Source: Cercozoa sp. M6MM
Lineage: Eukaryota > Protista > Endomyxa: Ascetosporea
Assembly (NCBI GenBank): GCA_040357565.1
Contig: JBDODJ010000035.1
Direction: 5' to 3' (one strand)
DNA: 64,000 bases
The notes beneath the pieces were generated by a model, which was not told the origin of the DNA, made no database searches, and saw only the letters and a list, made by a program, of their open reading frames with translations. Positions 1,862 through 64,000 of the stretch are shown here, piece by piece (positions within the stretch are counted from its first letter, which is position 1; each line of letters starts with the position of its first letter). The translations under genes were made by a program, and so were the position numbers.

Positions 1862-3878
1862 ATGGAGCACGTGCAGGCGCAGTTGCGCGACGCGCAGCAC
1901 ACGGGCGACCCGGAGAAGGCGGTGCGAAGTGTGAATGCAGCACGTGAGGCCATCCGCGCGGCTGTGAGTGGCTCGGTTGACCAGGGTCAGGTGGGCGGCG
2001 TGCTGCACGAGCTGGCATGTGTGCTGGATGACCTGCCGCAGCTGCGACTCGAGGCCACGCACGGCCAGGCGTCATCACAGGTCCACCCCCATTTACCCCC
2101 CCTGTTTACCCCCTGTTTACCTCCCTGTTTACCCTTTTAACCTCCAATCGCACTCTGTGTTTACCCCTGTTACTTCTCTTATCCGCATCCCTCTTGTGCA
2201 GGCCGCTCATGCCGGCGAATTGGAGGCACTGCAGGTCGCCAGTGCGGAACAACTGGCGAAAGGCGAGCACTACTGCGTGCGCCGACTGCAGCGTATCGAT
2301 GCACTGCTGTCGCATGATACTGCGTGCAGTGACCTGTGCGACCTGCTTACACCCAAGGTAGCTAGTTGCTTCCTTCCCCCTAACACCCCTGTGACCCCCT
2401 TGACACCCTTCCCGTAGACCTGGACGGAGGAGTCGGTGGCATCCATGAGCGGCGCCGTGGCCGTGCTGCATGTTGTGCACCGCCGCGTGCGTCGCAAGGT
2501 GCTGCTGTCGCGACTGCTACTGCCGCTGGCGCGACTGCTGGCCAGTCTGTGCCTGGCACAGGAGAGCGCACTCCGCCTCATAGAGCAGCTGTCGGTACAC
2601 ATGCTCCCTGTACTGTACCAGTGTACTGTACCAGTGTACTGTACGAATGTATACTGTACTAGTGTACTGTACCAGTGTACCGTACCAGTGTACCGTACCA
2701 GTGCACTGTACCAGTGTGCTGTCCCAGTGTACTGTCCCAGTGTACTGTCCCAGTGTACTGTACGAATGTATACTGTGCTAGTGTGCTGTACTAGTGTACT
2801 TTACTCATGTATACTGTACTAGCATGTATACTGTACTAGTGTACTGTACGAATATTAGTGTACTGTACTATTGTATACTGTATTGTATACTGTAGTAGTA
2901 TACTGAGTGTACCGACCGTTGTACTGCACAGGTACTGCGCGTGGCCTGGCAGCGTGGCACCGAGGTGCTGCGGGTCTGCCTGCTGGCCGCTGAGCACGAG
3001 CGCAGTCAGCGCCGGTCGTCGGAAGACTACGGCGCCCTTCTGCTGCCGCTGCTGCGCACCGTCGATGACACTGTGGTACGGGACACTGTACGGGACACTG
3101 TGGTACGGGGGTAGGATACGGGCTATGAGGTGAGGATACGGTGCTCTATGGTGGGGACAGGCGGACCTGCCGTCGCTGATGCACGCGTGGACGCGCTTGG
3201 AGACAGCGCTGACTCGTCGACTGCTGCAGTGCGACAGCGTCACTCTGCGTGCCTCGGCACTCGCCCTCCTGGCCGACGCCCTCGCTCTTGTGCGCCGATA
3301 CGACCGCTTTCGACTCGCTCGCGCACTCGCTGTACTCACCCCCCCCCGAGATGCCTCTGCTTTTATTTGTGCTTGTAGCTTTATACATTTACTGAGCCCT
3401 ACTGGTGTGCATATACCTATATACTCATACCTATATACCTATACCTTTACCTATACATATTCCTATACCTCTACCTCTACCTCTACCTCTACCTCTACCT
3501 GTACACGTATACCGATCCACCTATACTTTTATACACATGTACCTTTTCGCCCTCCCCCATGATCTTCATGTACAGGAGAACGTGAGGCAGCGAGTGCGCG
3601 ACCTGATGCTGCGACGAGCGCACGCACAGATGCACGCGCACGTGCGCGAGGTGTTTGCCTTCATGGTAAGTCCTGTGTACTGAAGAGGGCGTGTCTGTGT
3701 ATACTTAAGGCTGCTGTCTGTGACTACAGGCCAAGGAACGAGCCGATGCGAGCGACATACGGGCTCTGTGGACGGCCTGCGTAGCCGCCGACGCCGAGGC
3801 GGACGCGCGGCGGCCCTTGCTGGCCGAGGCACTGCGCTCCAAGGCGTACGACCCGCTGTCCATTGCGTCCTTCCTGGT

Positions 3879-4070: not shown

Positions 4071-7000
4071 TGGCATGTGTCATTGGCGTGTGTGACACAT
4101 GCCAAGTGACTGACGGTATCTGGGGGGGGGGGGGCGATAACTAGGACGGTGTGCCACGTGCGCAGACGCAGAGCAAGGTGATGGAACTGCCGCGCAGTGC
4201 CAACTCGGCGCGACTGCTGTGCACCGTGGCACGTGCGCTGCTGCAGCGAGGCGATCCCAGCGTGCCACGTGGCACCGAGCAGATCATCAACCGCGTGGCC
4301 ACGTGGTCACTTCAGGTACCACATGCACACGATCATGGGTCACTGGTGTCACTTGGGTCACTGAGAGACGGTGTGAGTGTGCAGTGGCCCAACGACGGTG
4401 ACGACGGTCCGCGTGCGTGCGCCTCGTTGCTGCGCGAGCTGCCGCGCCTGCTGCCCGAGACGTCGCTGCTGCCGCTGCTGCGCACGTGTCTGCGGCCGTG
4501 GTTGCCGTCACTCTTCCAGAGGTACACTCTCCCAGGGTACACGGAGGGGGCGGGAACTAGGGGCTAGGAGGCAAGGGGCTAGGAAGCAACACGTGTCTGT
4601 GCAGGCCGTCGCACCTGAAGCTGCTGACGCAGGTGCTGGAGTCGCTGCGCGCACGTGACCTGAACGACGGTGAGTCACATGGGCACAGTCGCGTGGCTAC
4701 GCTGCTCAAGTCGCTGGTGCCACCGTCGACGGTAACATCATCGGTGGCATCATCGGTGGCATCATCGGTGCCACCGCCAGTGTCACCGTCGGTGACTGCA
4801 GGGTCACCGTCGGCATCAGCGACCGCGGTCTCGTCCGCCGGGTCGGCTTGGGGCACCGGCAGGCCCAAGTCGGCCGCGTGGCTGCGCGCGCACTGCGTCG
4901 CCTCGCTCACGCGGCACGCCGCCTCACTGCACCGATTCCTCGACCTCGACGGCGACGCCGTGGACGCCAAGGTGCCGCTTTACCCCCATTTACCCCCCTA
5001 TTATTCCCCTATTATCCCCCTATTAATCCCCTATTAATCCCCCTATTAATCCCGCTATTAATCCCTATTTATCCCCCCATTAATCCCCCTATTTATCCCG
5101 CCATTTATCCCCATCTATCCCTCTATTTACACCCATATTTATCCCCTATTTAGTCCCTATTTACCCCATATTTATCCCCTATATAGTCCCTATTTACACC
5201 CGTATTTACCTGCCGATTTACCCCTATTTAGTCCCATCTTACTCCCCTATCTACCTCTCTCTATCCTCCTCTTTATCCCCTGACGCCCTATGGCAGATGC
5301 GGCAGGAGGCGCAGACGCAGGGCGAGTCGGTGCAGCGACTGGTGTCTCTGCACCTGCGACTGCTGCGGCAGCACTCGTCTCTCCCGCTGTCTGACAACGA
5401 CGCCTGCCAGCTGCTGCATGCTGCTGCACAGGTGCGGCCTTTACCCCTGTTTACCCCCCTCCCGTTTTAACCCCCTGTTTACCCCCGTGTTTACCCCTAT
5501 TTACCCCCCCCCCCTGTGTGCAGCTGCTATGTGCGCCAGAGTTTCTATCGTCGGCAGTGTCAGTGCGCAGTGCGATCCTCGACTTTCTGTGTACGCTCCA
5601 TCTCATCAGGGGGGGGGGGGGGTGTATAAGGGTATGGGTATTGGAGTATTGGGTATGGGGGCATAGGGGTATGGGTATAGGGGTATAGGAGTATAGGTCA
5701 TAGGGGTAAAAGGGTATGTGTGTGTGCAGCCGACGAGTACGCGCAGGCACACGCGGCGGTGCAGGTGCCGGTGCAGCCTGCTGCCGACGGTGCCGACAGC
5801 AGCTGTCTCAGCCGAGTGGCCTGTGAGGCACTCGAGGTGCTCATGCTCGCCGTGGATGTGCAGTCGCCCAACGACCCTGCTATTGAGGTAGCCTGTTACT
5901 TCCCTGTTACTCCCATCTTACCCCGTCTTACTCCCCGTCTCACCCCCATCTTACCCCCCCCCCCGTCTCACCCCTCTTAACCTTCTCTTCCCCCATCTTA
6001 CCCTCGCCCCGACAGGACATGAAAGCGGCCTTTCTGGACGAAGCGGCATGGCGACTGTTCCAGCGTTGCTTCATCACTCGCAATAGGTATTACCCCCTCC
6101 CTCATTGCCCCCAGTGCCCCCATTGCCCCCATTGCCCCATTGCCCCATTGCCCCATTGCCCCATTGCCCCCATTGCCCCCATTGCGCCCATTGCCCACAG
6201 TGTGCCCTCTGATTTACCCCCCCCCCGTGTAGACTGGACAACACGCTGCGTGTGCAGCACCAGCGTCTGCAGCTCGTAGTGCTGGACGAGGGCGACGGTG
6301 CGGCGACGGTGCCGACCGGGTGGGACAAACTGCTGGCCGTGGCCGTGACCTGCGACACGGACGGTGTGGCACGTGCTGCCTCCGACCTCGTGGCGCGCCT
6401 CGTGCGTCAGTCGCCTCTGCGTGCCTTCAGTGCCACTGGTACGCACTGTCCCCATTGATTCCTACTGGTCCTTATTGATCCCTACTGGTCCCACTGGTCC
6501 CAATTGATCCCTACTGGTCCATCTCGGCTCAGGCGGACGGGACGCACTGGTGGTGTCGCTGCTGCGGTCGCTGCAGGCGCTGCTGGGCGACGTGGTGGCG
6601 GCCGGACAGCTGCACCGGCCCGAGCAGCGACGACTGGCGACTCGCGCGGCCGCTCTGCTGCGCCACGTGGTGCTGGCACGTGTGCCCTCACTGAGACAGC
6701 ACATGACCACTCAGGGCTTCCAGCGCTGGCGACTCTGGTCGCACGAGTCGGCTAGACTCTGCGAGTCGCCGCTCGCCGAGTCCTCCGCGCGGACGCTACC
6801 CGGACACCTGTCCTTCGCCACTGCTGCTGTACACCCTTGTGTCTCACGTGCTATCGTGCTCACGTGCTACCGTGCCCACGTGCTACCGTGCCCACGTGCG
6901 CAGGTCATGCCGGACGAGATGGCCGACCCGTGCCTGCGCGAACTGGTGTCGTCGAATCTCTCGCTGCCGCGCAGTGCCACCGTGGCCGACCTGCGTGCGA

Positions 7001-10000
7001 GGTTTTTACCCCCCCCCATCTTGCCCCCATCTTGCCCCCATCTTGCCCCCCATCTCACCCCACCTTGCCCCTATCTTACCCCCTGTTACCCTCCCTCCAG
7101 TGCTGCGAGGTACCTCGGCGTGCCTCCCGACAGCGTGCGTCTGGCCATCCGCGCGGCCGACTGTGCCGCCGATGCCTACGACCAGCCTGTCAGTCTGACC
7201 ACAAGTGCCACTGGCGACGACAGTCCTGTCGGTACCACAGGTACTACGGGTACAGGTACTAGAGGTGCAGGTACTAGAGGTACAGGTACTGCAGGCACCT
7301 GGCGTCCCGTCGAGGGCAGCGAGTGCCTGCCGCTCGCCATGTTCCTGCGCGCACCTGTGCCGTCCGAGGCGCACGTGCTCGTATGGCCGGTAGAACCCTC
7401 TCTCTCTCTGTGGCTGATCTCTCTGTGTGACTGGACTGACTGGTGTGATCAACTGACGGTGTGACTGACTGACTGGTGTGACCAACTGACGGTGTGACTG
7501 ACAGGTGCACGAGTGCGACACGGCCGACGAGAGCGAGAGCGCGGAGACGCAGCTGCTGGCCAAAACGCCGCCCGAGCTCTGGCTGCCCGAGGACCTGTGT
7601 GTTTTACCCCCTGTTTACCCCCCCCCCCATTTACCCCCTATTTACCCCTCTGTTTACCCCCCTGTTTACCCCCATCTTTACCCCTCTTTCCTTCCTGTTT
7701 TCCTCCCTGTTTACCCCCCTCCTCCCGGGCAGTGCCCCGCCAGTGACGCCGTCCTTCGTGGCCTGGAAGTCGCTGCTGTCGCCGCAGGAGCAGCAGCTGC
7801 TCTTCACATGGACTGCGCCGCTCGCCTGGCTCTCGCCCGACCTGGCTGGTGGCTTTACCCCTCCCCCTGTCCCCCTGTTCACCCCCCTATCCCCCTGTTC
7901 ACCCCCTATCCCCCAGTTTACCCCCCCAGTGACCCCCCCCCCCCCCCGGGACAGAGCTGGCGCTGGTGCTGCAGTACCGCGAGGGAGCGCCGGCACTGAC
8001 GACGTCGGAGGACACGGCGTCGCAGTCCAGTACGGACGATGCCGTCGGTCAGTACACGGTCCAGATGGACGGCGAGACGGTCCGTATGTACGACCTGGAG
8101 GACAGCAGTAGCCAGGAGGACGAGTGCTCGGACGCGTCCGCCGAGTCGTCCGAGTGGGACGACGGCGCCTACTTCTCGGACACCGAGTCGGACGCGCTGT
8201 CGGAAGCGGCCTCCTCCGACGACGACGATGACTGGTACCAGCGCACGTGGGTCTCACTGGGACACGTGGGTCTCACTGGGACACGTGGGTCTCACTGGGA
8301 CACGTGGGTCTCACTGGTGGGTTCCACTGGGCACGTGTGCCACTGGACAGGCCGCAAGGCCGACTGGGCGCCGAGTGGCCGCGGCTGCAGGACGACGCCG
8401 TCGACGTGTCCGCGCTGACGCCGCTGCTGTCCGCGTGGAGCGATGCGCCGCTGCACCTGGCGCTGGCGCTGGAGCGACTGCTGCTGCGCCGACTGCACGC
8501 GCGCCAGCTGCGCCACCTCGCTCTCCGACGGCGCAGGTGCTACCCCATGCCCTAATATCCCATGTGTATACCCTACCCATGTACCCCTACCCTATGTACC
8601 CCTACCCTATGTACCCCTACCCTATGTACCCCTACCCTCTGTACCCCATGTACCCCTACCCTATGCACCCCTACTCCATGTACCCCACCCTCAGAGGCAA
8701 ACGTCGCGGACGGTCACCGGCGTATGCGCGGCCCAGCAGCGGCGGCGGCGTGGTGACGCGCGCGCAGCGGCGGCGTGCCTCGGCGTCGCTGGCGCTGCTG
8801 GCCGCCGTGGCCGTGCCCTTCGCGCAGTCGCTGCGGCAGCGCGTCGCTGCGGCCGACGGTGTGTTTTACCCCCCTGTTTACCCCCCTCCCCCGTTTACCC
8901 CCCCCCCCCCCGTTTCCCCCTGCAGGCGACCTGGCGGCAGTGACCGCGCTGGTGAACGACGGCGACTGCAGCCGTGCGCGCGGACTGCACCAGCTGCTGG
9001 CGGTGGCACAGGCACTGCGCGCTCTGGCACAGGACGCCGTGCGTGTCACCGTGACTACCAGTGGTATCAGTGGTGGTATCAGTAGTGGTATCACCACTGG
9101 TGGTACCACTGGTACCGAGTCGCAGCAGCAGCACCGTCTCCTTCTGCCGTCGTCGGACCTGCCGACACTGGATGAACTGTTGCGCACGGTACCCTGTCTT
9201 ACGGGGGGGGGGGGGTAACACGTGTGTGCACGTGTGGACACGTGGGCACGGTGCAGGTGTTCCGCATGGCACTGGCCGTGGTTGATCTGGGCGGGCAGGA
9301 CGGTGCCGCCGTGGACGAAGTGATCTACCGCACCGGCATGGCCACGGTGGTTCGCTGCGGCGCCTCGCTGCTGCTGGCACGTGCGGCACCGTGGCAGCCG
9401 GAGGAGCAGGCACAGGGGGGTAAAAAGCAGACGCAACTGCTGGCAGACGTGGCAGGCGACTACGCGCGGCTGCTGGCGGCGCTGCTGCACGACGAGACAC
9501 GCGCCGCACTGCAGCACTCGGCTCTGCTGTCGCTGCGCACCTTGGTAGCTTGCCCTCCAGTTGGCACGTGTGCTCCAGTCCAGTGAGCCAGTTAGTGATC
9601 CCACTGGGCACATGTGAGCAGGCCAGAGTGAAGTCACGTGGCGCCAGTGGTATGCACCATGCCTTGGTGGAGACACTGGCGTCCTACCTGACCACTGCCG
9701 ATGACACCGAGGACGACGAGGCCTTTGACGGACAGGACACCATCTTCGAGGCACTCTCGGCCTTCTTGCCGCTGCTGTCGGCGCTGCCGCGGTGCGTTTT
9801 TNNNNNNNNNNNNNNNNNNNNNNNNNNNNNNNNNNNNNNNNNNNNNNNNNNNNNNNNNNNNNNNNNNNNNNNNNNNNNNNNNNNNNNNNNNNNNNNNNNN
9901 NCGTTTACTCCCCTGTTTACCCCCTAACTCCCCGGGCAGGTGCGGCCGGAACTGCTAGGCGGCGACAATGCACTAAACTGCGAGCAGTGCGGTACCTCTG

Positions 10001-13000
10001 TATGTACATAGGGGGGATAGTACAGATGGACCGGTGTGCATGTGTACAAATGGTGTGTACAAATGGACAGGTGTGAAGCGAGACACGACACGGCGCTCCT
10101 CGATGCTCGAGCTGCCGGACACGCTGCTCATCACGCTGAAGCGATTCGACTTTGATCTGCACACGCTGCGTCGTCGCAAGATACAGCAAAGGTAGACTAC
10201 ATCTTACCCCCCCCCATACCCCATCTTTCTCCCCATCTTGTCCCCTTGTATACCCCCTATATACCCCATCTTGCCCCCCCTTGATGATTAGGTTCCCTTT
10301 CCCTCACGCACTGGACATGGCGGAGTTCGCGTTTGGTTCGTCGGCACGTGGCGCGGCACGTGCGCAACTGGACGGTTTGGTATGTGTGGCACACAGCACA
10401 GTGCGAGTGACTGAGTGGGACGCTCTGATCACTGTGGGTTGGCACGTGTGCGCATCAGCAGGTGCAGTACGAGCGCGGCGACTACGAGTACGAGTGTGTG
10501 GGCGTGGTGGTGCACAAGGGCGGCGCCGACTCGGGCCACTACTTCTCGCTGCTGCGCGCACGTGCGCCGGGTCCACTGGAGGACGGTGACGTTGATGTCT
10601 TCCAGGTGGAGTGTCTCCTTGATCTCTCTCAGGGGAAGGGTACTTGGTGTGCGCGTGTGTGTGTGCACGTGCGTGTGTGTGTGCACGTGCATGTGTGTGT
10701 GTGTGTGTGTGTACAGGGCACTCAGGAGGAGCGGTACGACTGGTCGAAGGCACGTGGCCAGTGGTTCGAGTTCAACGACCGCGACGTGCGGCCGCTGCCG
10801 TCGGCGGCTCTGGTGCCTCGCCTCAGCTTCGGCGGCGGCGGCGACGGCGGCGATCAGTCCCAGTCGGCCTACGTCCTCGTGTACCAGCGCCGCCGGCCGC
10901 GCTCGTCGCTGCTGCCGCTGCACGTGCCCAGTGACAGTGCCCACGTGCCCAGTGGCAGTGACCACGTGCCCAGTGACCACGTGTCCACTGGCACTGCCCA
11001 CGTGTCCACTGGTCACACGGACCGACTGGTGCTGGCGCCGCACCTGCGCGACGAGTGGCGCCGCATCCGCGCGGACAACGACTCGCTCGTGCAACGCGCC
11101 AAGCTGGGCAACCTGGAGGTGTGTCCTCCTTGACCCGCTTTACCCTCCCCCCCCATCCCCTTTACCCCCATCCCCTTTACCCTCCACCTCCTTTACCCCC
11201 ACCCGCCCCCAGATGGCCAACTTCGTGGCCGCCATGGCTGAGCGAATCCGTCGACGCGTGGCACAGGAGACACAAGAGAAGGGGACCCATCAGCGGACAC
11301 AACAGGGGACACAACAGGGGACGCATCAGGGGACACAACGGACAGGACTGTCGGCCGGCCTGGTGCATGCGTTCGGCACGTGGTTCGACCTGTTCGTTCG
11401 TGTGACGGTGCGGTACGGCGGCACTGATCGCACCGGCACTGATCGCAGAGTGCAGGACGGTGTCACTGGCACTGATCGCAGAGTGCAGGACGGTGTCACT
11501 GGCACTGATCGCACTGACGGTGACACGTGCCAGGCCATGTGCCGACTGGCCGAGCACGTGGTCGGCGTGTCGTCGCAAGCGGCGCGACTTGTGCTGCGCC
11601 GACTGCTCGAGTCGGCCGACGGTCTCGGTATGCCCCTGTGTCCTGTCTGTCCATCTGTCCTGCCCATCTGACCTGCCCATCTGACCTGTCCGTGTGTACC
11701 TGTTCTGTCTGTACACCTGGGTCCATCTGGACAGACCTGGACAAAACCAGCGATCCGGCCACTCTGCTGACGCAGATGGTCGTCGAGGCGCCGCGTGAAT
11801 CCGTGTGTTTTACCCCCCTGCTTACCCCCTGTTTACCGCCCTGTTCACCCCCCTTAGGTGCGTCGGTTCTTCGCGTCGCTGGTGGTGCGATGCAGCGTCC
11901 GCGCGGACGGTTCGCTGGACCGACGACGGTGTCTGCGCACGTGCGCGACGGTGCTGCGACGGCAGTTTTTGCAGCGACACCTGCGCTCGCTGGCGCCGCT
12001 GGACGGTGTGCACAGGGTACCTACCTTGTCCTACTTGTACAGTCCTACCTGGCCTGTCTATCTGGCCTGTCTATCTGGCCTGTCTATCTGGCCTGTCCAT
12101 ATGTACCCCTGTGTGCGTGCGTGTGTCCGTGTGGACAGGTGCAGTGTGCCACGCAGCTGCTGGACACGATCGGCCAGCTGCTGGACAGCGAGGACGACGG
12201 CCCCGTGGCGCGCGACGTCGCCACGCAAGTGCTGGCCACGCTGCAGGACATCCTGATGGTACTTTACCCCCCCCCCCCACTCCTCCCTACCCCTTTACCC
12301 CTACCCATTTACCCTATCCCTTGAGCCCTACCCCCTTTACCCTATCCCCTTAATCCTATCCCCTTTACCCCCTTTACCCTATCCCCTTAACCCGTACCCC
12401 CTTTACCCTATCCCCTTAACCCCTATCCCCTTTACCCTATCCCCTTAACCCCTACCCCCAGGAACTGCGTCGCATCGCGCCGCATGCAGCGTTGGCGGCG
12501 GCGACGTCGGCTCGCGCGTGTCCGAGTCTGCGCGTGGGCCTGACGCCGGTGGTGCGACTGCTGCGGCAGCGCAGTGTGGCCGCCGTGGTGGCCGACTTGG
12601 ATGCCACGGCCGCACTGCGACTGGCCACGGCACTGGCCACGGCGCCTGTCCTCAGTGCCGCCGACTTTGACGCCAGCACGCAGCGCGACCTGGTGCGCAT
12701 TTATACTCCCATCTTACCCATCTTGGTCCCATCTTACCCCCACATTGGCCTCCATCTTACTCCCATCTTACCCCTCTCTGAGCCCACCCTGACCCTCACA
12801 CCCACAGGTGAACGACGCCGTAACTCTGGCGCTCGATAGTGGTCGACTGGACGACCTGGTGCGCGAGGTGTGTCGCCACCTGCTGCTGCAGGCCGACTTT
12901 GATGGCGCTGTGCCTCTGCTGGCTGTGTTGGTAGCTTTACTCCCTTACTCTTATTCTCCAGTTACCCCCTCTTCCCTCCCCCCACCCACAGTACCGAGCA

Positions 13001-15990: not shown

Positions 15991-16225
15991 TCATGGTTTA
16001 ATCTAACGTATCGTGAGTAAGTTACAATTACCGTCTCATCTCGTCCGATGGCTGACTGGCTTTTGTCAAGTTGGGTGCATTGGCAATGAACTCCCCCGTC
16101 AAGTAAACAAACTGTACGAGAGTGGCTTTCAGCAGCGCAGCGCAGAAAGGGACGGTATAAGACTGGCTGGAACTGTTAAAACAAAAAAAACTGCAAAAAG
16201 AGGAGTAAAACTGCAAAAAGAGGAG

Positions 16226-16377
16226 TGCCAACGCCCGGACTCGAACCGGGATCCACCCGCTTTACCCACAACAACTTAATCGGTCGCCTGTACGGCGGCC
16301 AAATTTTCCAGAAAGAGAAAGATCGATTGGGGTGTCCCGAAGGACAGATGGGCGCTCTACCATTGAGCTACGCCGGC
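16226..16377 (-). ncRNA. tRNA-like RNA with ~79-nt structured insert in the anticodon arm (copy 1)
   Basis: Acceptor GCCGGCG/CGTTGGC+A, D arm GCTC-AATGGTA-GAGC, T arm CCCGG-TTCGAGT-CCGGG, T5 terminator just downstream. Differs from the 39028-39179 copy at 2 positions. Confidence 0.75.
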
Positions 16378-16550
16378 AACTGAACAATGATTATCAGTTA
16401 TATCAACCACATTAAAAATTGTCAACTTTGAGTTTCCGTGTAACCACATCATGGGCTAGTTTTGCTCGATCCGAACTCCCGTGGGGCGGAAACTTAATCA
16501 AGCAGACGATTAAATAATGGTAAATGCCATGCGTGACAAAGCTCTGGTGT

Positions 16551-38653: not shown

Positions 38654-38749
38654 CGCCACAAGTACATTTTGAGTATCAGCGCGCTGATGTGAAAGTCGGC
38701 CCCACCGAGCCATACTGGAGATGTTTTGTGGTAGTAACACTCTGCATAA

Positions 38750-38909
38750 ACACCAATCATGAAGTCGACTTCGGTGTCTTGGGGAACGTCAAAAGGGGAG
38801 TTGTATGGTCCTACCTGAGCGGACGGTAGACACGGCCATGCTGTTGTGACCCACCCCGGACTGGTGCAGGGGAACTTTCCTAGAAGACTCAACTAACTAA
38901 CTAACTAAC
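38750..38909 (+). mobile_element. Short retroposon (SINE or 5'-truncated LINE tail) with (TAAC)n tail and 15-bp TSD
   Basis: Flanking direct repeat TAACACTCTGCA(T/C)AA at 38735-38749 and 38910-38924. Second copy at 62637-62809. Confidence 0.8.
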
Positions 38910-39027
38910 TAACACTCTGCACAAGCAATACAGCTGTACATGAAACTAGCCCATGATGTGGTTACACAGAAACTCAAAGGTTGGCAATTTTTAATGTGGT
39001 TGATGTCTAGTAAAACATTGCTCAGTT

Positions 39028-39179
39028 GCCGGCGTAGCTCAATGGTAGAGCGCCCATCTGTCCTTCGGGACACCCCAATCGATCTTTCTCTTTCTGGAAA
39101 ATTTGGCCGCCGTAAAGGCGACCGGTTAAGTTGTTGTGGGTAAAGCGGGTGGATCCCGGTTCGAGTCCGGGCGTTGGCA
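39028..39179 (+). ncRNA. tRNA-like RNA with ~79-nt structured insert in the anticodon arm (copy 2)
   Basis: A box TAGCTCAATGG at 39035-39045, B box GGTTCGAGTCC at 39158-39168, 7-bp acceptor stem plus A73, T5 at 39186-39190, and no internal T4 run. Confidence 0.75.
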
Positions 39180-39391
39180 CTCCTCTTTTTGCAGTTTTAC
39201 TCCTCTTTTTGCAGTTTTTTGTTTTAACAGTTCCAGCCAGTCTTATACCGTCCCTTTTTGCGTGCGCTGCTGAAAAGCCACTCTCGTACAGTTCGTTTAC
39301 TTGACGGACGGAGTTCATTGCCAATGCACCACATCGGACGAGATGAGACGGTAATTGTAACTTACTCACTATACGTTAGATTAAACCATGA

Positions 39392-41698: not shown

Positions 41699-43116
41699 AT
41701 GATTCGCCGCTGGCTCGAGCAGCGCCGGCAGCAGCAGAAGTACTCGCTGGGTGCGTTGAGGTCCTGTCCTTCCTTCCATCTGCAAACGTTGATGTTAAAG
41801 TCATCTATTTCCTGCAGAGGCTCTGAAGCGGCATCATACGACTCTGCTGCGCGAGCCAGAAATCACAGCGCGCAACTGTAGTCTTGTGATCGAGGTACAG
41901 TCACATAGTTCTTCCTGTACACTTCCTGCATACACTTGTACTTTTGTACATGATGTCCGTCCACATGTATCTGATTGTTCTGATTCAGACGCTGCGTGCG
42001 ATTGCCGAGCTGCTGATCTGGGGTGAGCAACAACGCGATGCGCGCTTCTTCGCCTTCTTTGCCGAGCACTGTAGTTTTACCCGCCTTTTTCCCCCCCCCC
42101 CTTTACCCGCCTTTTACTCTCCTTTACCCCGCCCCCTTCATCCCTGCCCCTCTGTAGCCATGCTGCAGCACTTTGTGCGCCTGCTGGACCAGGAGCACGT
42201 GACGTCGGCCGTCAAGACGCAGATTCTGCAGTCGCTGTCGATCATCGTGGCCAACCTGCAGCAGGACGTGTCTGGTACAATTGTACCTGGCCTGTTTGCC
42301 CCCCTTGACTAGCACGGTGTGCACCCCCTTAACTGCGTATGTGTGTCCGACAGTGTACTACCTGCTGTCCAACAACGTCGTGAACGATCTGATCGTGCAC
42401 CGTCACTTTGACTTTTCGGACGAGGAACTGCTCGGCTACTTTGTGTCCTTCCTGCGCACGCTGTCCTGTCGCCTCAATGTCAACACGGTACCGTTGGTTT
42501 GTACCGGGTCCGTTTGTACCAGCCTTGTCCATTTGTACCTGTGGTTCTGCCTGTGCACAGCTGCAGTTCTTCTTCAATGCGCAAGCCAATGACTTTCCGC
42601 TCTACTCGGGTACGCTCTGAGTGATCGCACCGTCACTGAGTGATCGATCAGTGATCGACACTGACTGGACTGACTGAGAGCTAAATTGACACGTGCGCAG
42701 AGGCCATTCGGTTCTTCCACCACCCGGAGCGCATGGTGCGCGTCGCCGTGCGCACCGTCACGCTGCACGTGTAGTTTGGGGGGGGGGGGGGGGGGGGGGG
42801 GGGNNNNNNNNNNNNNNNNNNNNNNNNNNNNNNNNNNNNNNNNNNNNNNNNNNNNNNNNNNNNNNNNNNNNNNNNNNNNNNNNNNNNNNNNNNNNNNNNN
42901 NNNTCGGCCAGTTTCCGTCTGTCGGTGGCGGATTCGGAGCTGCGTCGCTTCATTCTGGATCAGTACACACTAGACACTTTTGCTGGGTGGTCCAGATGGA
43001 CGGTACACTTTGTACCTGTAGGACAGCGGTGCCGTACTTTTCCAACCTCGTGTGGTTCGTGCGACGCGAGTGCGTGGCCTTGTCGGCGCTCACGCAGCGG
43101 CACCAGGTGTGTATCT

Positions 43117-44817: not shown

Positions 44818-47092
44818 CAATGATGCCAGTGACGGTGTCACCGATGATACCACTGACACTGACGGTGACACTAACGGTGACACGGACGGTGACACCACAC
44901 TCCTGGACCGCAATGTGCTGCAGCCGCGCGGACAGCTGCCGCTGCTCCAGCAGCTGTCGTCGCCGATCTCGCGTCGCGACGACCTGCGCGCCTGCCTGTC
45001 GCGTACACTCTGCCCCCCCTTAACCAACCTGCCCCTTAACCAACCTGCCCCTTAACCGACCTGCCCCTTAACCAACCTGCCCCTTAACCAACCTGCCCCT
45101 TAACCNNNNNNNNNNTAACCAACCTGCCCCTTAACCAACCTGCCCCTTAACCAACCTGCCCCCTTAATCCTGCTCCTTAACTGACACTCCCTTAAGTATA
45201 CATTGTTGTAGGCAACCGCGCGCGCAGTTTCGTCGTGTCGCAGCTCAACGGCGACGACGCCTCTGTCGCTGTGTGGTATGCCCCCTTAGCCCCCTTACCC
45301 CTTTACCCCCCTACCCCCTTACCCCTTTTACCCACGTTACCCTCTTACCCCCCTCTTGCCTCTCCCCCTCCAGTGCGGCATTGGCGCTGGCGGCGACGTC
45401 GTCGGTGGCGCACGCCGACGTGCTCAGTGGGTGCGTGGGCCTTTCTGGTATTTGTCTGGGTGGGGGTGCTGTGTCCGCGTGGATGTGCGTGTCTGTGCAG
45501 CTGCGGTCTGCTGCCGCCGAAGCGACTGCGGCGACGCCGTCTGCTGCAGTCGCTTCTGCTGGACGATGTGGCTGATCGATCAGACGGTGTGGTTGATCGA
45601 TCAGACGGTGTGACTGACGGTGACACTACTGATACCGACGGTGGTGATACTGAGTGCCCGGAGTACTCTGACCTGGTGGAGTCGCTGGTGGCGGTGCTGT
45701 CGCGCGACTCGCTGCGCGTGGCCTCACTGTACCACTCTCTGACTGGGGGATCATCTCTGACTGGGGGATCATCTCTGACTGGGGGATCATCTCTGAATGG
45801 GGGATCATCTCTGAATGGGTGATCATCTGGGTGCAGGTCGCTGCTGTGCTCGCTGTGCGACCGACTGGCCGTATGCCCTTATGATTATAGGTAGACTTCG
45901 GTCTGTGTGTGTGTGTACATGTGTGTTCGCGCGGAGCAGCACCCGTCGCTGATACCGTCGCACGCGGCGGCACTGGCACGTGCGCTGGCATGTGCGCGTC
46001 GCCACGTGGCCACTGTGTTCGGTTGCGAGACGGCACCGTCGCAGTCTGCCGAGACGAGTGAGGAGGAGGAGTCGCCGCTGGCTGGCATGCTGCTCGACGT
46101 CGTCGAACACGAGTGGCTCGCGCTGTGCAAGGTGTGATTACCCCCCTGTTTACCCCCCTGTTTACCCCTCTGTTTACCCCTCTGTTTACCCCCCTGTTTA
46201 CCCCTCTGTTTACCCCCCTGTTTACCCCNNNNNNNNNNNNNNNNNNNNNNNNNNNNNNNNNNNNNNNNNNNNNNNNNNNNNNNNNNNNNNNNNNNNNNNN
46301 NNNNNNNNNNNNNNNNNNNNNNNNNNNNCCCCCCCCCCCGTGTTGTTAGGTGGTGCGCTACCTGCTGCTGCGTCGGCTGTCGCAGCGACTGGGCGACGGT
46401 AGTGCCGAGTTGGCGATCTTCGAGGCACCGTCGATTCGGGCCTGTCAGGTAGACCACGCGCACTTCGACTCTCTCTTTCTGGTCTTGTGTTCTTGTATTT
46501 GTGTTCTTGTATTTCTTTTGTTGTGTTTCTCGTTTGTATTTGAGGATGGGGTGTGTGTCAGACGCTCAGTTCGGCCAGTCTGTCGCTGGTGCCGGTGCGC
46601 GTGCCGTCGCCGGGAACGCCGCGTGGAGTGCGACTCTTCGCGTGGCTACAGGATGACTTCCTGTGCCTCGTGACGCCGCATGTATTCTTTACCCCCTCGT
46701 CCCCTGCCTTCCCTCCAACCCCCCCCCCCCCCCGCGCTGTAGGAAGAGGAACACGTCAAGGTGCTGATGGCCGTTCCGATGCACGCTTTGACGGCACGCG
46801 AGGACGGTATCAATACGCTGAGTCTGCGGATTCGTGCGCCACATAAGGTGCTTGCATAATGTACATGGATGGACATGCATGTCTATGTATATTGTATATG
46901 TGTATTATATATATATATCGAATGTATAAAATGTCTGTGTGTGGGCAGCCGCATGCCTCTTGTCGCATCGTCGAGGGCACGCATGACCGGCCGCAGTGGC
47001 TGCTGCGTCTCGCCTTCTTTGGCGACGACATGGCTCTGCGTACCACGCTTGCTTTTGTGCAGCACCACCGCACGTACATTGTCCCTCTGATT

Positions 47093-58931: not shown

Positions 58932-61190
58932 ATGGCATCTAACGACGATTTTGACCTATTTACAAAGCGCAGTGGTGTGCTTGGGCAATAAAATAGTTGG
59001 CGATCAGGGAGACTGGTTTGTATCGATATTTTTCCCTGTCATGTTCGCAGGCAGGAAGAAGGGCCGCCATGAAGAGAGCAACGCGAGTCACAGTGGTGAT
59101 CAGAGCGATCAGCGCGCGGCGTTTCTCGGGCAACAGTCGCATCACCTCGGGCTGCAGCGACAGAAAGCCCAGGAGAGAAGGCAAGAAAAACTGCGTCAGG
59201 AGATGGCAGTACACCATTCTATATAGCCGTCTGTTTCGTCCATGTTGGGCATTGTTTGGACAGGAGACACTCGGCAGCACAGCGGTGTCGGCGAAGCGAC
59301 CCTCTCGTGCTGGCGGTAACTTGCAACAGCACCCTAGTGTACTGTACAATGTGAGATGCGCTGTGCCCATGCAGGTGCACTGACGATCCAGGAGAGCAGC
59401 GGCAACAGCAAGCAGCGACGACGCAAGAAGCGACGCGACAAGCGTGCTCAGACTGACGCTGCTGACGGTAGTGCTTCTCCCTTGCTCCGCCTCTGTGTCT
59501 GCCTGCAATTCCTGTGCCTGGTGTAGCCACCTTGAGATTCGATCCCAACGCACCCGTACTTGAGTCCGTGACGAAGGCTATTGTCAGCCCCTCTGTATGC
59601 GTGTATGCTTGTACAGGTGACATCGCGACGTGCCTGTGGGTGCCAGGCGCGAGGTGGAGGTACTCGCTCTGTGTCGGTGTGATTTGCACGTGTCATACCT
59701 CACGTGTCATACCTCACGTGCCATTCAACAGAGGGTCACGAGATGGTTGCCATGTGCACACAGGTGTGTCTGTTGCTTTAGTATGCTTGTTCTCTCGTGT
59801 ATGTACCGACCCCTGTTGGTATGTGCAGTGCGGGTATGTGGTGTGCGGTGCCGAGGCTCGTTCGTCGCCGTCGCAGCGAGCGCCTTGTCTCTTCTGCTGC
59901 GCTCTCATTGATGCCTTGTCGTAGCTTTACCCTCCTTGCTTCCTGCCCCTCTGTACTGTGTGCGCACTGACAGAGGCGACACCATAGTGTCAGACGACAT
60001 GGCATTTGCGCATGCCGAACTGTACACACGCTTGCAATGTCGGTACGGGCCTTTCATGTTTGCACATGTGCAGAGGACCCCTGGGTACCGGCGAAGGTCG
60101 CCTGGCCACCGAGGTGGCCGTTGTGGTACGTAAACATCATAAGAAAATCTATCTATCTATACATCTCTATGGATAGTATGTATACATATATACATATATA
60201 CGTAATTGTTTGTGTGTTGTATGTATACAGCACAAGGTGAAACAAGAGGCGGCAAAGGACGCGCTGCGCCGACGCGACGAACTGCTACTCTTCCAGCAGA
60301 CACGTGCGCAACGCACCGCCGTATCTTTACCCCCCCTCTTTTACCCCTCCCCTCTTCCGCCCCGTTTACCCGTATGTTATCTGTCCTGAAGGTACACGAC
60401 ACACAAAGTGACGTCATTGCCGATGCGCACTCTGTCTGGGTACCTTTTTTGTGCTATGTTGCTCCTGTCTGTAACCTCTTGTTTTAGGCATCGGAGGAGG
60501 ACAGAAAGCGACACCAACGAGAGGCGAAACAACTCATCAGTCGTCTCGAGTATGTGTGTCTTGCTTTGACTATTTTGCGAGGGGAGGGGTGTGTATATAT
60601 ATATATATATCATATATATCTATATATATATATATCTATATATTTATATATTGACAATGTATGTATGTGTGTGTTTGACAGGAGGAAGGCGATGCACCGC
60701 ACCAGATCTCCTTTGCTCTGGGACCGCGTAGCTTTTCTTACCCTTCCGTATACCCCCCTGTATATTCCATGTACCTATGCTTGTGTATGGGCAGAAGGAG
60801 AGGTCGTCGTAGTCGAACATGATGAGTCGGTACTGCATATTCTCTCTACTATTTACCCACTTTACTCTTTACCACTCGACAGCAAACTAAGGACGTTCGC
60901 AAGCGCATGCACCGCATGCTGGAGGGTCGTGGTACTTTACCCCCCCCCCCAACGTTACCCCTTCGCCTATGTGCGTATGCGTGCAGAGGCAGACGATGAC
61001 GTCGTCGCCGTTATTTCCGACGTGCCTGCCGCCGATCAAAGTACGTGTAAATATATGTATGTATGTATGCATGTATGTATGTATGTATGTATGTATGTAT
61101 GTATGTACGTATGTGTATGTGTATAGAGACATCGGAGTACTTCCGACGACACAACATGAGCGATCACGCTAAGAAGGGTAGTTGTGTTTG

Positions 61191-63144: not shown

Positions 63145-64000
63145 CCAGCCACACACACAACAACATCAACACATATACAGGGACATACCAGAGTGCACGC
63201 GCAGCACCTCGACACCAGGCACGGCGTCCAGCGAGTCGGGCCGCACCGGTCCAAACACCGTCACCAGGTCGGTCTGCCATCACAATCACTCTCTTAGTTA
63301 AGGGGCACGGGGGCAGGGGGGAATACATCCTCAGCCTGCAGTGGCAGCGCAAACGACTGCAGCAATCGCTGCACCCGCATCTCCTCCCCGGGCCCCGGGC
63401 CCCCCCCCCCCCCCCCCGCGCGGGCCCCCTAAAGTTACCTGTCGCTGCAGCAGCCAGCGCTGCGCCAGGAGTTGTCGCCGCAGCGACGGCAACAGCGCCA
63501 ACTCGACCGGCTGCAACGAGCAGCCGTAGTCCTCCTGCAGGGGGGGGGGGGGGTATAGGGGGGGTCGGCGGGGAGGTAGGGGGTAAAGGTGGGGTAGGTA
63601 GGGGGGGGTAAAACCGGCGTCTTGTTCCACGGCTTGCCGGCAGCAGCAGCGGCGTTCTGTTCGAGTCGCGCCGTCACAGCGGCTCGCCAGTCGATCGGTT
63701 GCATGTCCTGTCCATATGGACGGTACACTACATCTGTACAGATGTACAGTACACATGGACAGGGTACATGCAGAGCCAGCAGGTGCCGACCCAGGTCCAG
63801 CATGGCATGCCGCGCCTGCAGCTGCGTCGCCTGCAGCAGCGACACGCCCGCCCACAACACACTGTCCGCGAACCGCGACTACAGGGGGGGGGGGGGGGGG
63901 CAAACGGGGGCCCCGCGGGGGGCGGTAGGGGGTATACCAAGTCGCCGCCGGCAAAGTCGGCGTCGCTGCCACGTAGCGCCAGTGCTGCACACACACAGGG
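63001..64000 (-). CDS. 3' end of a spliced hypothetical protein
   Basis: Exons DMQPIDWRAAVTARLEQN, EDYGCSLQPVELALLPSLRRQLL, TDLVTVFGPVRPDSLDAVPG and AGTPPSQQQAEALWTRDEFDCAAWLIDA*. Confidence 0.55.

Follow-up and report, generated by a model that had tools for sequence, protein, structure and literature searches.

The 64,000-nucleotide (nt) stretch of DNA analysed here, referred to throughout as the window, belongs to contig 35 (JBDODJ010000035.1) of the 23.6-Mb, 2235-contig assembly (GCA_040357565.1) of Cercozoa sp. M6MM, a small marine eukaryote with an intron-rich genome. It carries two copies, A and B, of a small-RNA gene that combines the body of a transfer RNA (tRNA) with a long insert in the anticodon loop. 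Copy A was matched from end to end by the Rfam tRNA model (RF00005) at 45.4 bits against a gathering score of 29 (E=1.9e-6 for the whole window), far above chance, with 84 nt in the anticodon loop skipped by the alignment. At 152 nt, the copy is 79 nt longer than a 73-nt tRNA, the extra length falling at the anticodon-loop position, which agrees with the 152-nt unit bearing about 79 additional nt in its anticodon arm proposed by a first-pass annotation of the same sequence. A complete cloverleaf body is present, with a 7-base-pair (bp) acceptor stem, a D arm, a T arm containing GTTCRANYC and a discriminator base. The elements that the annotation had listed, namely the acceptor stem with its wobble pairs, A73, the D and T arms, the A and B boxes, the T5 run, the hairpins and the pyrimidine tract, all lie where it had placed them (Table 1).

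Copies A and B are members of a gene family. Five related loci were recovered by DNA search, and a covariance model (R1) built from these five and run on the 23.6-Mb genome revealed a sixth, so that the family comprises the two window copies and one member on each of contigs 55, 30, 119 and 1 (hereafter C55, C30, C119 and C1). Members are 127-187 nt long, with about 55-115 nt inserted in the anticodon loop. The next-best R1 matches were the canonical tRNA-Tyr (23.8 bits) and a tRNA-Lys (22 bits), and no decayed family copies occurred among the R1 matches across the genome, all six members being intact. We therefore rejected a tRNA-derived short interspersed nuclear element (SINE) or retroposon, as there are only six copies, each complete to the discriminator and each with its own promoter box and terminator; the many decayed SINE-like copies that the first-pass annotation had named as evidence against its proposal did not appear in the genome search. 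Comparison of copy A, C55 and C119 gave insert identities of 69-76% against 55-68% for the flanks, the insert being less conserved than the body.

Alongside the family, the genome has a full canonical tRNA set, in which Tyr-GUA, Asp-GUC, Gly-GCC and Cys-GCA are all represented and whose genes lack the upstream box. These tRNAs are encoded in dense arrays on contigs C314, C53 and C1320, with one to few genes per anticodon. The arrays on C314 (L007:1107-7902; 31 genes) and C53 (L008:1493-4456; 17 genes) use both strands with spacings of ~10-200 nt and together make up nearly the whole canonical complement, parts of which are duplicated on other small contigs.

Copies A and B differ at two positions, both in or beside the variable hairpin, and lie within a segmental duplication that reaches from ~85 nt upstream to several hundred nt downstream, starting at the promoter box and extending into the last (3') exons of an FKBP-type isomerase gene. 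Just upstream of the copy A promoter box is a (CTAA)n run (~38890-38914, within 38735-38924) that is absent upstream of copy B, where similarity between the copies ends, a pattern that fits insertion beside copy A after the duplication.

Beyond this genome, a metagenome scan with a family-specific pattern returned 0 matches, and a second scan, with a body-only pattern allowing a long gap, gave no family insert among the matches listed, which included pairs of neighbouring tRNAs and a few tRNAs with long inserts, all of them unrelated. Metagenome contigs among these listed matches (L043:1489-1629, L087:2751-2889, L139 on the minus strand and L082:18-156) include a eukaryote-type tRNA-Tyr with a ~66-nt intron. 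Also in this set are several tRNA-shaped units of high GC content, in which 60-70 nt are inserted past the 5' strand of the anticodon stem and which have no sequence relationship to the six-member family.

Table 1. Positions of the family genes, their parts and related features (window positions unless a contig or locus is named).
Feature	Position	Strand	Basis or remark
tRNA-shaped gene, copy A, 152 nt, G1 to A73	39028-39179	+	Rfam tRNA 45.4 bits; family model R1 171.4 bits
Promoter box TAGCCCATGATGTGGT, snRNA-type PSE, begins 81 nt before mature 5' end	38947-38962	+	exact 16-mer at four family genes
A/T-rich box AATTTTTAATG, ~35-40 nt upstream of mature 5' end	38986-38996	+	sequence reading
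Acceptor stem GCCGGCG/CGUUGGC, 7 bp, G4.U69 and G5.U68 wobbles	5' strand 39028-39034	+	sequence reading
U8 A9, then D arm GCUC-AAUGGUA-GAGC with A box TAGCTCAATGG	D arm 39037-39051	+	identical in 6/6 copies
G26-C27-C28-C29-A30-U31, 5' strand common to two competing helices	39052-39057	+	alignment, RNAalifold
Hairpin 1 GUCC-UUCG-GGAC, directly after C32 U33	39060-39071	+	paired 24/24 cells
C-rich strand ACCCCAA, then pyrimidine tract UCGAUCUUUCUCUUUCU (39083-39095)	39072-39095	+	partly conserved among paralogs
AAAAUUUGG, Sm-like	39098-39106	+	sequence reading
Variable hairpin GGCCGCC-GUAAA-GGCGACC, one C.A mismatch	39105-39123	+	sequence reading
GUGGGU, 3' strand of insert-closing helix (partner G26-U31)	39136-39141	+	paired 36/36 cells, RNAalifold
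G-U-A-A-A, would-be anticodon GUA with A37 A38 after a 33/34 or 34/35 cut	39140-39144	+	alignment
GCGGG, 3' strand of canonical anticodon stem	39145-39149	+	paired 24/30 cells
Variable loop UGGAU, between GCGGG and T arm	within 39145-39179	+	sequence reading
T arm CCCGG-UUCGAGU-CCGGG with B box GGTTCGAGTCC	39155-39171	+	stem paired 30/30 cells
Discriminator A73	39179	+	sequence reading
T5 run, 7 nt past discriminator, further T runs after	39186-39190	+	sequence reading
Copy B	16226-16377	-	Rfam tRNA model, sequence comparison
Promoter box TAGCCCATGATGTGGT of copy B	16443-16458	-	exact 16-mer
T5 terminator of copy B	16215-16219	-	sequence reading
Family member C35, two copies	A 39028-39179, B 16226-16377	+, -	
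Family member C55	C55:43490-43643		
Family member C30	C30:103639-103765		
Family member C119	C119:27464-27617		
Family member C1	C1:258950-259136		
U6, U2, U1 and U5 snRNA loci	U6 L165-L168; U2 L033:1573-1773; U1 L169-L170; U5 L171-L172		box and T run in all examined
Satellite arrays in the window	2098-2166, 4985-5506, 7609-7923, 8871-8900, 11145-11198, 12269-12437, 42082-42129, 45308-45333, 46155-46227, 60332-60371, 63581-63606		

Promoter and terminator signals

Upstream of four family members stands the identical 16-mer TAGCCCATGATGTGGT, a proximal sequence element (PSE) of the small nuclear RNA (snRNA) type, with the variants TAACCCATGAT in C119 and TGACCCATAAG in C1; the core of this (T)RRCCCATRA box lies 70-78 nt before the mature 5' end in all six copies. 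Elsewhere in the genome, a near-copy of the family box was located upstream of a U2 snRNA gene, and (T)GACCCATGA, with a CCCATGA core, was found ~68 nt before the RNA start in the U1, U2, U5 and U6 genes. The difference between the two spacings predicts a leader of 2-10 nt for the family transcripts, as would be expected of an RNase P substrate. The A/T-rich box AATTTTTAATG between promoter box and gene may be TATA-like, with CATTTGTRGATATGG at the equivalent position in C55 and C30.

Downstream, a run of at least four T occurs within 12 nt of the discriminator in 6/6 members. The U1, U2, U5 and U6 genes examined also carry a T run shortly past their 3' ends, U6 being present in at least nine identical copies in the genome. 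Since U1, U2 and U5 have such runs as well, a T run alone is no proof of transcription by RNA polymerase III (Pol III), and with box and T run common to all examined snRNA genes, these signals do not separate a Pol II-type from a Pol III-type gene. To judge from these signals, the family consists of promoter-equipped small-RNA genes of snRNA type in which, in addition, the A and B boxes are perfectly retained, and their transcription by Pol III is probable.

Pairing and contents of the insert

Pairing was assessed on an alignment of the six paralogs, in which a cell denotes one base pair in one copy and 500 shuffles served as the control. The acceptor stem was paired in 42/42 cells and the T stem in 30/30, with four and two pairs, respectively, changed on both sides, and the D stem and both elbow loops were invariant in every copy. 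Within the insert, hairpin 1 was paired in all 24 cells, with U-A replaced by C-G in two paralogs beneath loops of UUCG, CUCG or UACG. The 5' strand G26-Y31 is able to pair with either of two 3' strands, making the two resulting helices mutually exclusive. The canonical anticodon stem (27-31 with GCGGG) was paired in 24/30 cells, with an A30.C40 mismatch in five of the six copies. The 6-bp insert-closing helix (G26-Y31 with GUGGGU) was paired in 36/36 cells and shows C-G to U-A and G.U to G-C changes in C1.

RNAalifold chose the insert-closing helix. In single-sequence folds, only ~2 kcal/mol separates the two competing helices, and the fold as a whole has an unremarkable energy (z = -0.75); the 3' strands of the two helices form a 9-nt tandem repeat, GUGGGUAAA + GCGGGUGGA. 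With the insert-closing helix, the whole structure was paired in 100% of 156 cells and had 8 pairs changed on both sides, values reached by 0/500 shuffles, the counted changes being those of paralogs in one genome and not independent events. This pattern argues for structural selection on the tRNA body. Acceptor pairs 2-71 to 6-67 vary freely among the six members, five of which have A as discriminator and one (C1) G, which argues that they share no aminoacylation identity.

Hairpin 1, the C-rich and pyrimidine stretch and the closing helix are the conserved parts of the insert. A UNCG-type hairpin follows U33 directly in each of the six copies, and that of copy A can be extended to UGUCC-UUCG-GGACA (39059-39072). 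In C119 (U-GCCC-UUCG-GGGC), the 13-mer UGCCCUUCGGGGC recurs unchanged as the 5' stem-loop of U6 (UGCCCUUCGGGGCA, positions 1501-1514 of the U6 loci L165-L168), and in C1 this stem is capped by a UACG loop. This likeness may be due to chance, as for any stable UNCG hairpin, or may reflect a shared protein-binding module. Further along, the Sm-site-like motif reported by the first-pass annotation is present as AAUUUGG in the window copies only, followed there by a hairpin, and is replaced in the four other paralogs by AAUCUCUGG (C55), AAUCUGUUG (C30), AAUCUUCAGG (C1) and AAACUGG (C119), the last three degenerate and that of C30 lacking the hairpin. Compared with snRNAs of this genome, AAUUUGG resembles the Sm site AAUUUGUG of U5, and AAUCUCUGG resembles the element AAUCUCUA of U1. 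The motif is not conserved across paralogs, and the Sm site in the form first proposed is not supported.

The window also contains satellite arrays of the G-strand unit GGGGTAAA plus 1-3 nt, placed directly at exon borders. The sense strand at every window array checked reads exon/GT(N0-6)TTTACCCC(N)TTTACCCC..., and many introns of the genome begin in this way, with almost no 5' splice-site consensus past GT. Genome-wide, the pattern GGGTAAAGNGGGT gave 608 matches with at most one mismatch, compared with 17 for a control. The window RNA carries GGGUAAAGCGGGU at 39138-39150, equal to 1.5 units of the complementary strand of the satellite and held within a helix by an internal C-rich mimic. From this complementarity, together with the U6-like 5' hairpin, the pyrimidine tract and the Sm-like site with its hairpin, one could draw a tRNA-bodied, snRNA-like ribonucleoprotein component that takes part in the splicing of these introns, pairing with the donor-proximal satellite and so helping to define weak donors. 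We consider such a guide highly improbable and rejected it for the family. A match to the abundant unit GGGTAAAG is confined to the window copies, the paralog variants GGGTAATG and GGGTAGTG being rare in the satellite; the paralogs have GGGUAAUG, GGGUAGUG or GAGCAGUU at the position of GGGUAAAGCGGGU, which are likewise rare there, so that the complementarity does not extend to the family as a whole.

The centre of the insert is variable. It forms a 7-bp hairpin in the window copies and C55, which is absent in C30, and a D-arm-like hairpin, GCUC-GUUCUA-GAGC, in C119. In C1 (L162:1501-1687, minus strand), the 117-nt insert holds a complete circularly permuted cloverleaf in the order anticodon 3' strand, variable loop, T arm, acceptor 3' strand, tight turn, acceptor 5' strand, D arm and anticodon 5' strand, so that a 7-bp acceptor hairpin closed by the tight turn joins the 3' half to the 5' half. 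When the inner halves were joined by script, ARAGORN folded a 73-nt tRNA, the anticodon reported depending on the join point. The topology is that of a spacer-less tandem dimer in which the outer halves pair together and the inner halves pair together, an arrangement proposed as the tandem-duplication intermediate in the origin of permuted tRNA genes (PMC3978253). The C1 layout bears on the origin of the family and shows that large changes are tolerated at the insert centre.

The same layout could be taken to mean that the genes are evolutionary by-products, still transcribed but without a function of their own and with the inner part decaying, from the complete cloverleaf of C1, which folds as a tRNA once joined, through the D-arm-like remnant retained by C119 at that place to the lone 7-bp hairpin of the window copy, in keeping with the published tandem-duplication model (PMC3978253). 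We regard this as improbable. In each dispersed copy the box spacing and the terminator are kept and the D and T loops are perfect, with compensatory changes across four helices, which points to purifying selection and not to decay; moreover, origin and present function are separate questions. The family is real, multi-copy, under selection and unusual.

In combining internal promoter boxes with an element upstream, and in having a terminal stem, a pyrimidine-rich interior and a variable centre, the family also recalls a vault RNA or Y RNA, both of them Pol III RNAs. That the family represents such an RNA of this organism is extremely unlikely. The first-pass annotation had counted a strong match to a known Rfam family as evidence against its proposal, and a search of the locus at E up to 10 matched tRNA only, with no vault, Y, ribozyme, small nucleolar RNA or signal recognition particle RNA match. 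The shoulder domain of the major vault protein (MVP) and the TROVE domain of Ro60 were not matched in a six-frame search of the genome, a weak negative given the fragmented, intron-rich assembly and the lack of a positive control for the MVP model. Two further candidates were rejected, namely a retroelement primer, as sites complementary to the 3' end plus CCA were confined to the family genes and to a chance-level background, and a telomerase template formed by CCCCAA, as that motif differs in every paralog.

Splicing, decoding and the proposed RNA

ARAGORN in default mode found no tRNA in the window. In intron mode, it assigned Gln(UUG), Asn(GUU), Gln(CUG) and Gly(GCC) to different paralogs, and these gene models were rejected as inconsistent. 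The insert was likewise rejected as a spliceosomal intron, as it has no AG at a usable 3' end. Removal at the canonical 37/38 position reproduced the product described by the first-pass annotation for copy A, with loop CUGUCCA, anticodon GUC, C37 and the A30.C40 mismatch. Across the family it leaves loops of CUGUCCA, CUGUCCU or CUGCCCU, all with C37, where essentially all decoding tRNAs have a purine, and with anticodon GUC in four copies and GCC in two (C119 and C1). The middle base of this would-be anticodon covaries with its partner in hairpin 1 and so behaves as a stem base.

We therefore consider a tRNA spliced at 37/38, decoding through GUC (GCC in C119 and C1) with C37, to be very unlikely. 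To the differing, stem-like anticodons and the pyrimidine at position 37 are added an A73 unsuited to Asp and the presence of canonical Asp and Gly tRNAs. The window copy does have a nested fold in which ACCC of the C-rich strand can pair with GGGU at 39138-39141, and this 4-bp helix places the 3' site beside it in a 3-nt bulge (AAA), but by hand analysis its register is not conserved in C119 and C1. In favour of 37/38 is also the splicing endonuclease itself, which in eukaryotes acts as a ruler without strict need of a local motif and would cut there (PMC4090602).

A motif search covering all cut pairs in five copies (A, B, C55, C30 and C119) found no bulge-helix-bulge, with two 3-nt bulges and a 4-bp helix, that gives a tRNA-sized product with an anticodon loop; the only such motif common to the five removes the anticodon region and breaks the D arm. 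The genome's own tRNA-Tyr(GUA) (C314, L007:2372-2464), read by hand, has an 18-nt intron at 37/38 with a perfect bulge-helix-bulge of the h-B-H-B-h' form, in which CUGU pairs with GCAG, the bulges are AA/U and AC/A and the inner helix is UGG with CCA, a motif that, for a nuclear intron of a eukaryote, looks unusually archaeal-like. A cut at 33/34 (or 34/35) in the family would give GUA in five copies and GCA in C1, with G1-C72 in all members. The copies share neither one anticodon nor one identity set, as isodecoders would. No splicing rule yields a consistent, ordinary decoder, in line with the first-pass view of a poor decoding tRNA.

As these genes cannot be interpreted as encoding normal decoding tRNAs, a new tRNA-bodied noncoding RNA (ncRNA) is taken as likely, and the form that we tentatively favour, at somewhat below even confidence, is a stable, unspliced, non-decoding RNA of ~150 nt. 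This reading draws on the snRNA-type promoter, the perfect closing helix beside a mismatch-tolerant canonical stem, the freely varying acceptor stem and discriminator and the failure of the splicing rules. A helix that would exist only in a precursor is kept perfect while the stem of the supposed mature product tolerates mismatch, and an unspliced product accounts for this better. Between the two options of the first-pass annotation, a Pol III ncRNA and a tRNA with a non-canonical intron, the promoter and the closing helix favour the ncRNA, and the G-U-A-R at the insert 3' end keeps a Tyr-like intron alive.

Expression of the proposed ncRNA would be directed by the snRNA-type upstream box, with a start 2-10 nt upstream of G1 suggested by the box spacing, Pol III as the probable polymerase, the A and B boxes possibly helping and the T run as the stop. 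The L-shaped body, with its acceptor stem, D/T elbow and A73, would then recruit RNase P, RNase Z and the CCA-adding enzyme and provide for stability and export. In place of a 7-nt anticodon loop, the 6-bp helix of G26-Y31 with GUGGGU would close the insert, which would display the UNCG-capped hairpin, the C-rich strand, the pyrimidine tract and the variable module, leaving ~8 nt (A-R-N-GCGGG) single-stranded beside the variable loop. The insert would be the working part, binding a protein or RNA, and the tRNA body the chassis for its processing and stability.

Several points weigh against this unspliced ncRNA. G34, A36 and a purine at 37 are kept at the insert 3' end in 6/6 copies, with U35 changed to C in C1, and a cut at 33/34 would leave the window product with the loop CUGUAAA, exactly as in the canonical tRNA-Tyr of this genome. 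Family and tRNA-Tyr also agree in the T stem (CCCGG/CCGGG) and the D stem, and this tRNA-Tyr is the next-best R1 match. In the canonical stem, two paralogs show the compensatory change C28-G42 to U28-A42, which suggests some constraint there. Given the ruler mechanism, splicing could take place even in the absence of a bulge-helix-bulge. The covariation is drawn from paralogs of a single genome, and no homologue outside this genome was found in the two metagenome pattern scans.

The first of these points lead to a tRNA-Tyr(GUA)-like gene with a long non-canonical intron at 33/34 or 34/35, whose 73-nt product would join C32-U33 to G-U-A-R-N; the closing helix and hairpin 1 would be precursor structures presenting the splice sites, and the excised intron might persist as a circular RNA. 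We hold this to be possible but rather unlikely. Beyond the Tyr-like stems and loop, it accounts for G-U-A-R in five of six copies, for an A73 that suits Tyr and for the retention of all tertiary-interaction positions in the body, and a precedent exists in the ectopic introns and upstream-promoter-dependent disrupted tRNA genes of Cyanidioschyzon merolae (PMC3728597, PMC3978253). However, the junctions lack a bulge-helix-bulge in the five copies scanned, and a ruler enzyme would cut at 37/38 and not at 33/34. All copies have G1-C72, whereas the genome's own tRNA-Tyr has C1-G72, the Tyr identity pair typical of eukaryotic and archaeal tRNA-Tyr. Moreover, member C1 reads GCA with G73, the mature stem of five of the six products would contain A30.C40, the acceptor stem varies widely among the supposed isodecoders, and a canonical tRNA-Tyr is already encoded.

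If the ~150-nt RNA is the mature form, it would represent in nature what the tRNA scaffold is by design, a complete, selected cloverleaf that serves solely to have a passenger domain processed and stabilized. Its expression would be driven by an snRNA-type promoter, and six diverged copies of it would have been maintained. If the genes are spliced, they would provide a eukaryotic nuclear tRNA intron at 33/34 without a bulge-helix-bulge, challenging the ruler model of the endonuclease, and a second, G1-C72 type of tRNA-Tyr. Under either reading, member C1 would preserve, in a living genome, the tandem-dimer intermediate from which permuted tRNA genes are proposed to have arisen.

Comparison with known systems

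Among the closest known parallels are the disrupted nuclear tRNA genes of C. merolae, which have ectopic or multiple introns or are circularly permuted (PMC3728597, PMC3978253). Like these, the family shows a tRNA interrupted at unusual places with an upstream promoter and a downstream T stretch, and C1, like the permuted genes, has a permuted cloverleaf whose layout is explained by the tandem-duplication model. The C. merolae genes, in contrast, have a bulge-helix-bulge wherever a junction occurs, and their products make up a complete ordinary decoding set, whereas here no such motif was found in the copies scanned, there is no consistent anticodon and a complete canonical tRNA set exists in parallel. 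The promoters differ as well, with an snRNA-type box here and a TATA-like element in C. merolae.

In metazoans such as Drosophila, tRNA-Tyr genes have long conserved introns that give rise to stable circular RNAs (tricRNAs). The family resembles them in placing GUA beside a long (~100 nt), structured and conserved intervening sequence that could itself be the product, yet tricRNA introns lie at 37/38 with the usual helix-bulge geometry in a normal C1-G72 tRNA-Tyr, so that position, 1-72 pair and promoter differ. The selenocysteine tRNA gene, transcribed from a PSE-type upstream promoter, is likewise a tRNA-shaped gene with an upstream snRNA-type proximal element. Its hallmarks are a UCA anticodon, 9/4 or 8/5 acceptor/T geometry, a 6-bp D stem and a long structured variable arm; the family, in contrast, has a 7/5 fold, a 4-bp D stem, no UCA in loop context and no long structured variable arm. 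With the Sm-class snRNAs, whose conserved, single-stranded Sm site (RAU4-6GR) lies beside a 3' hairpin, it shares the snRNA-type promoter box.

Vault RNAs, BC1, mascRNA and the tRNA-like domain of bacterial YrlA are small RNAs with no decoding role that make use of promoter or processing features taken from tRNAs, and the family is like the vault RNA genes in its internal boxes, upstream elements and variable centre. To our knowledge, none of these RNAs keeps a complete covarying cloverleaf with a payload inside the anticodon loop. Such an architecture was reportedly engineered by Ponchon and Dardel in 2007 as the tRNA scaffold, an intact tRNA body whose anticodon stem-loop is replaced by a structured passenger for the sake of processing and stability. 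The architecture here would be the same, but that scaffold is artificial, whereas the present family, as known from its sequence, is natural, multi-copy, promoter-equipped and apparently under selection.

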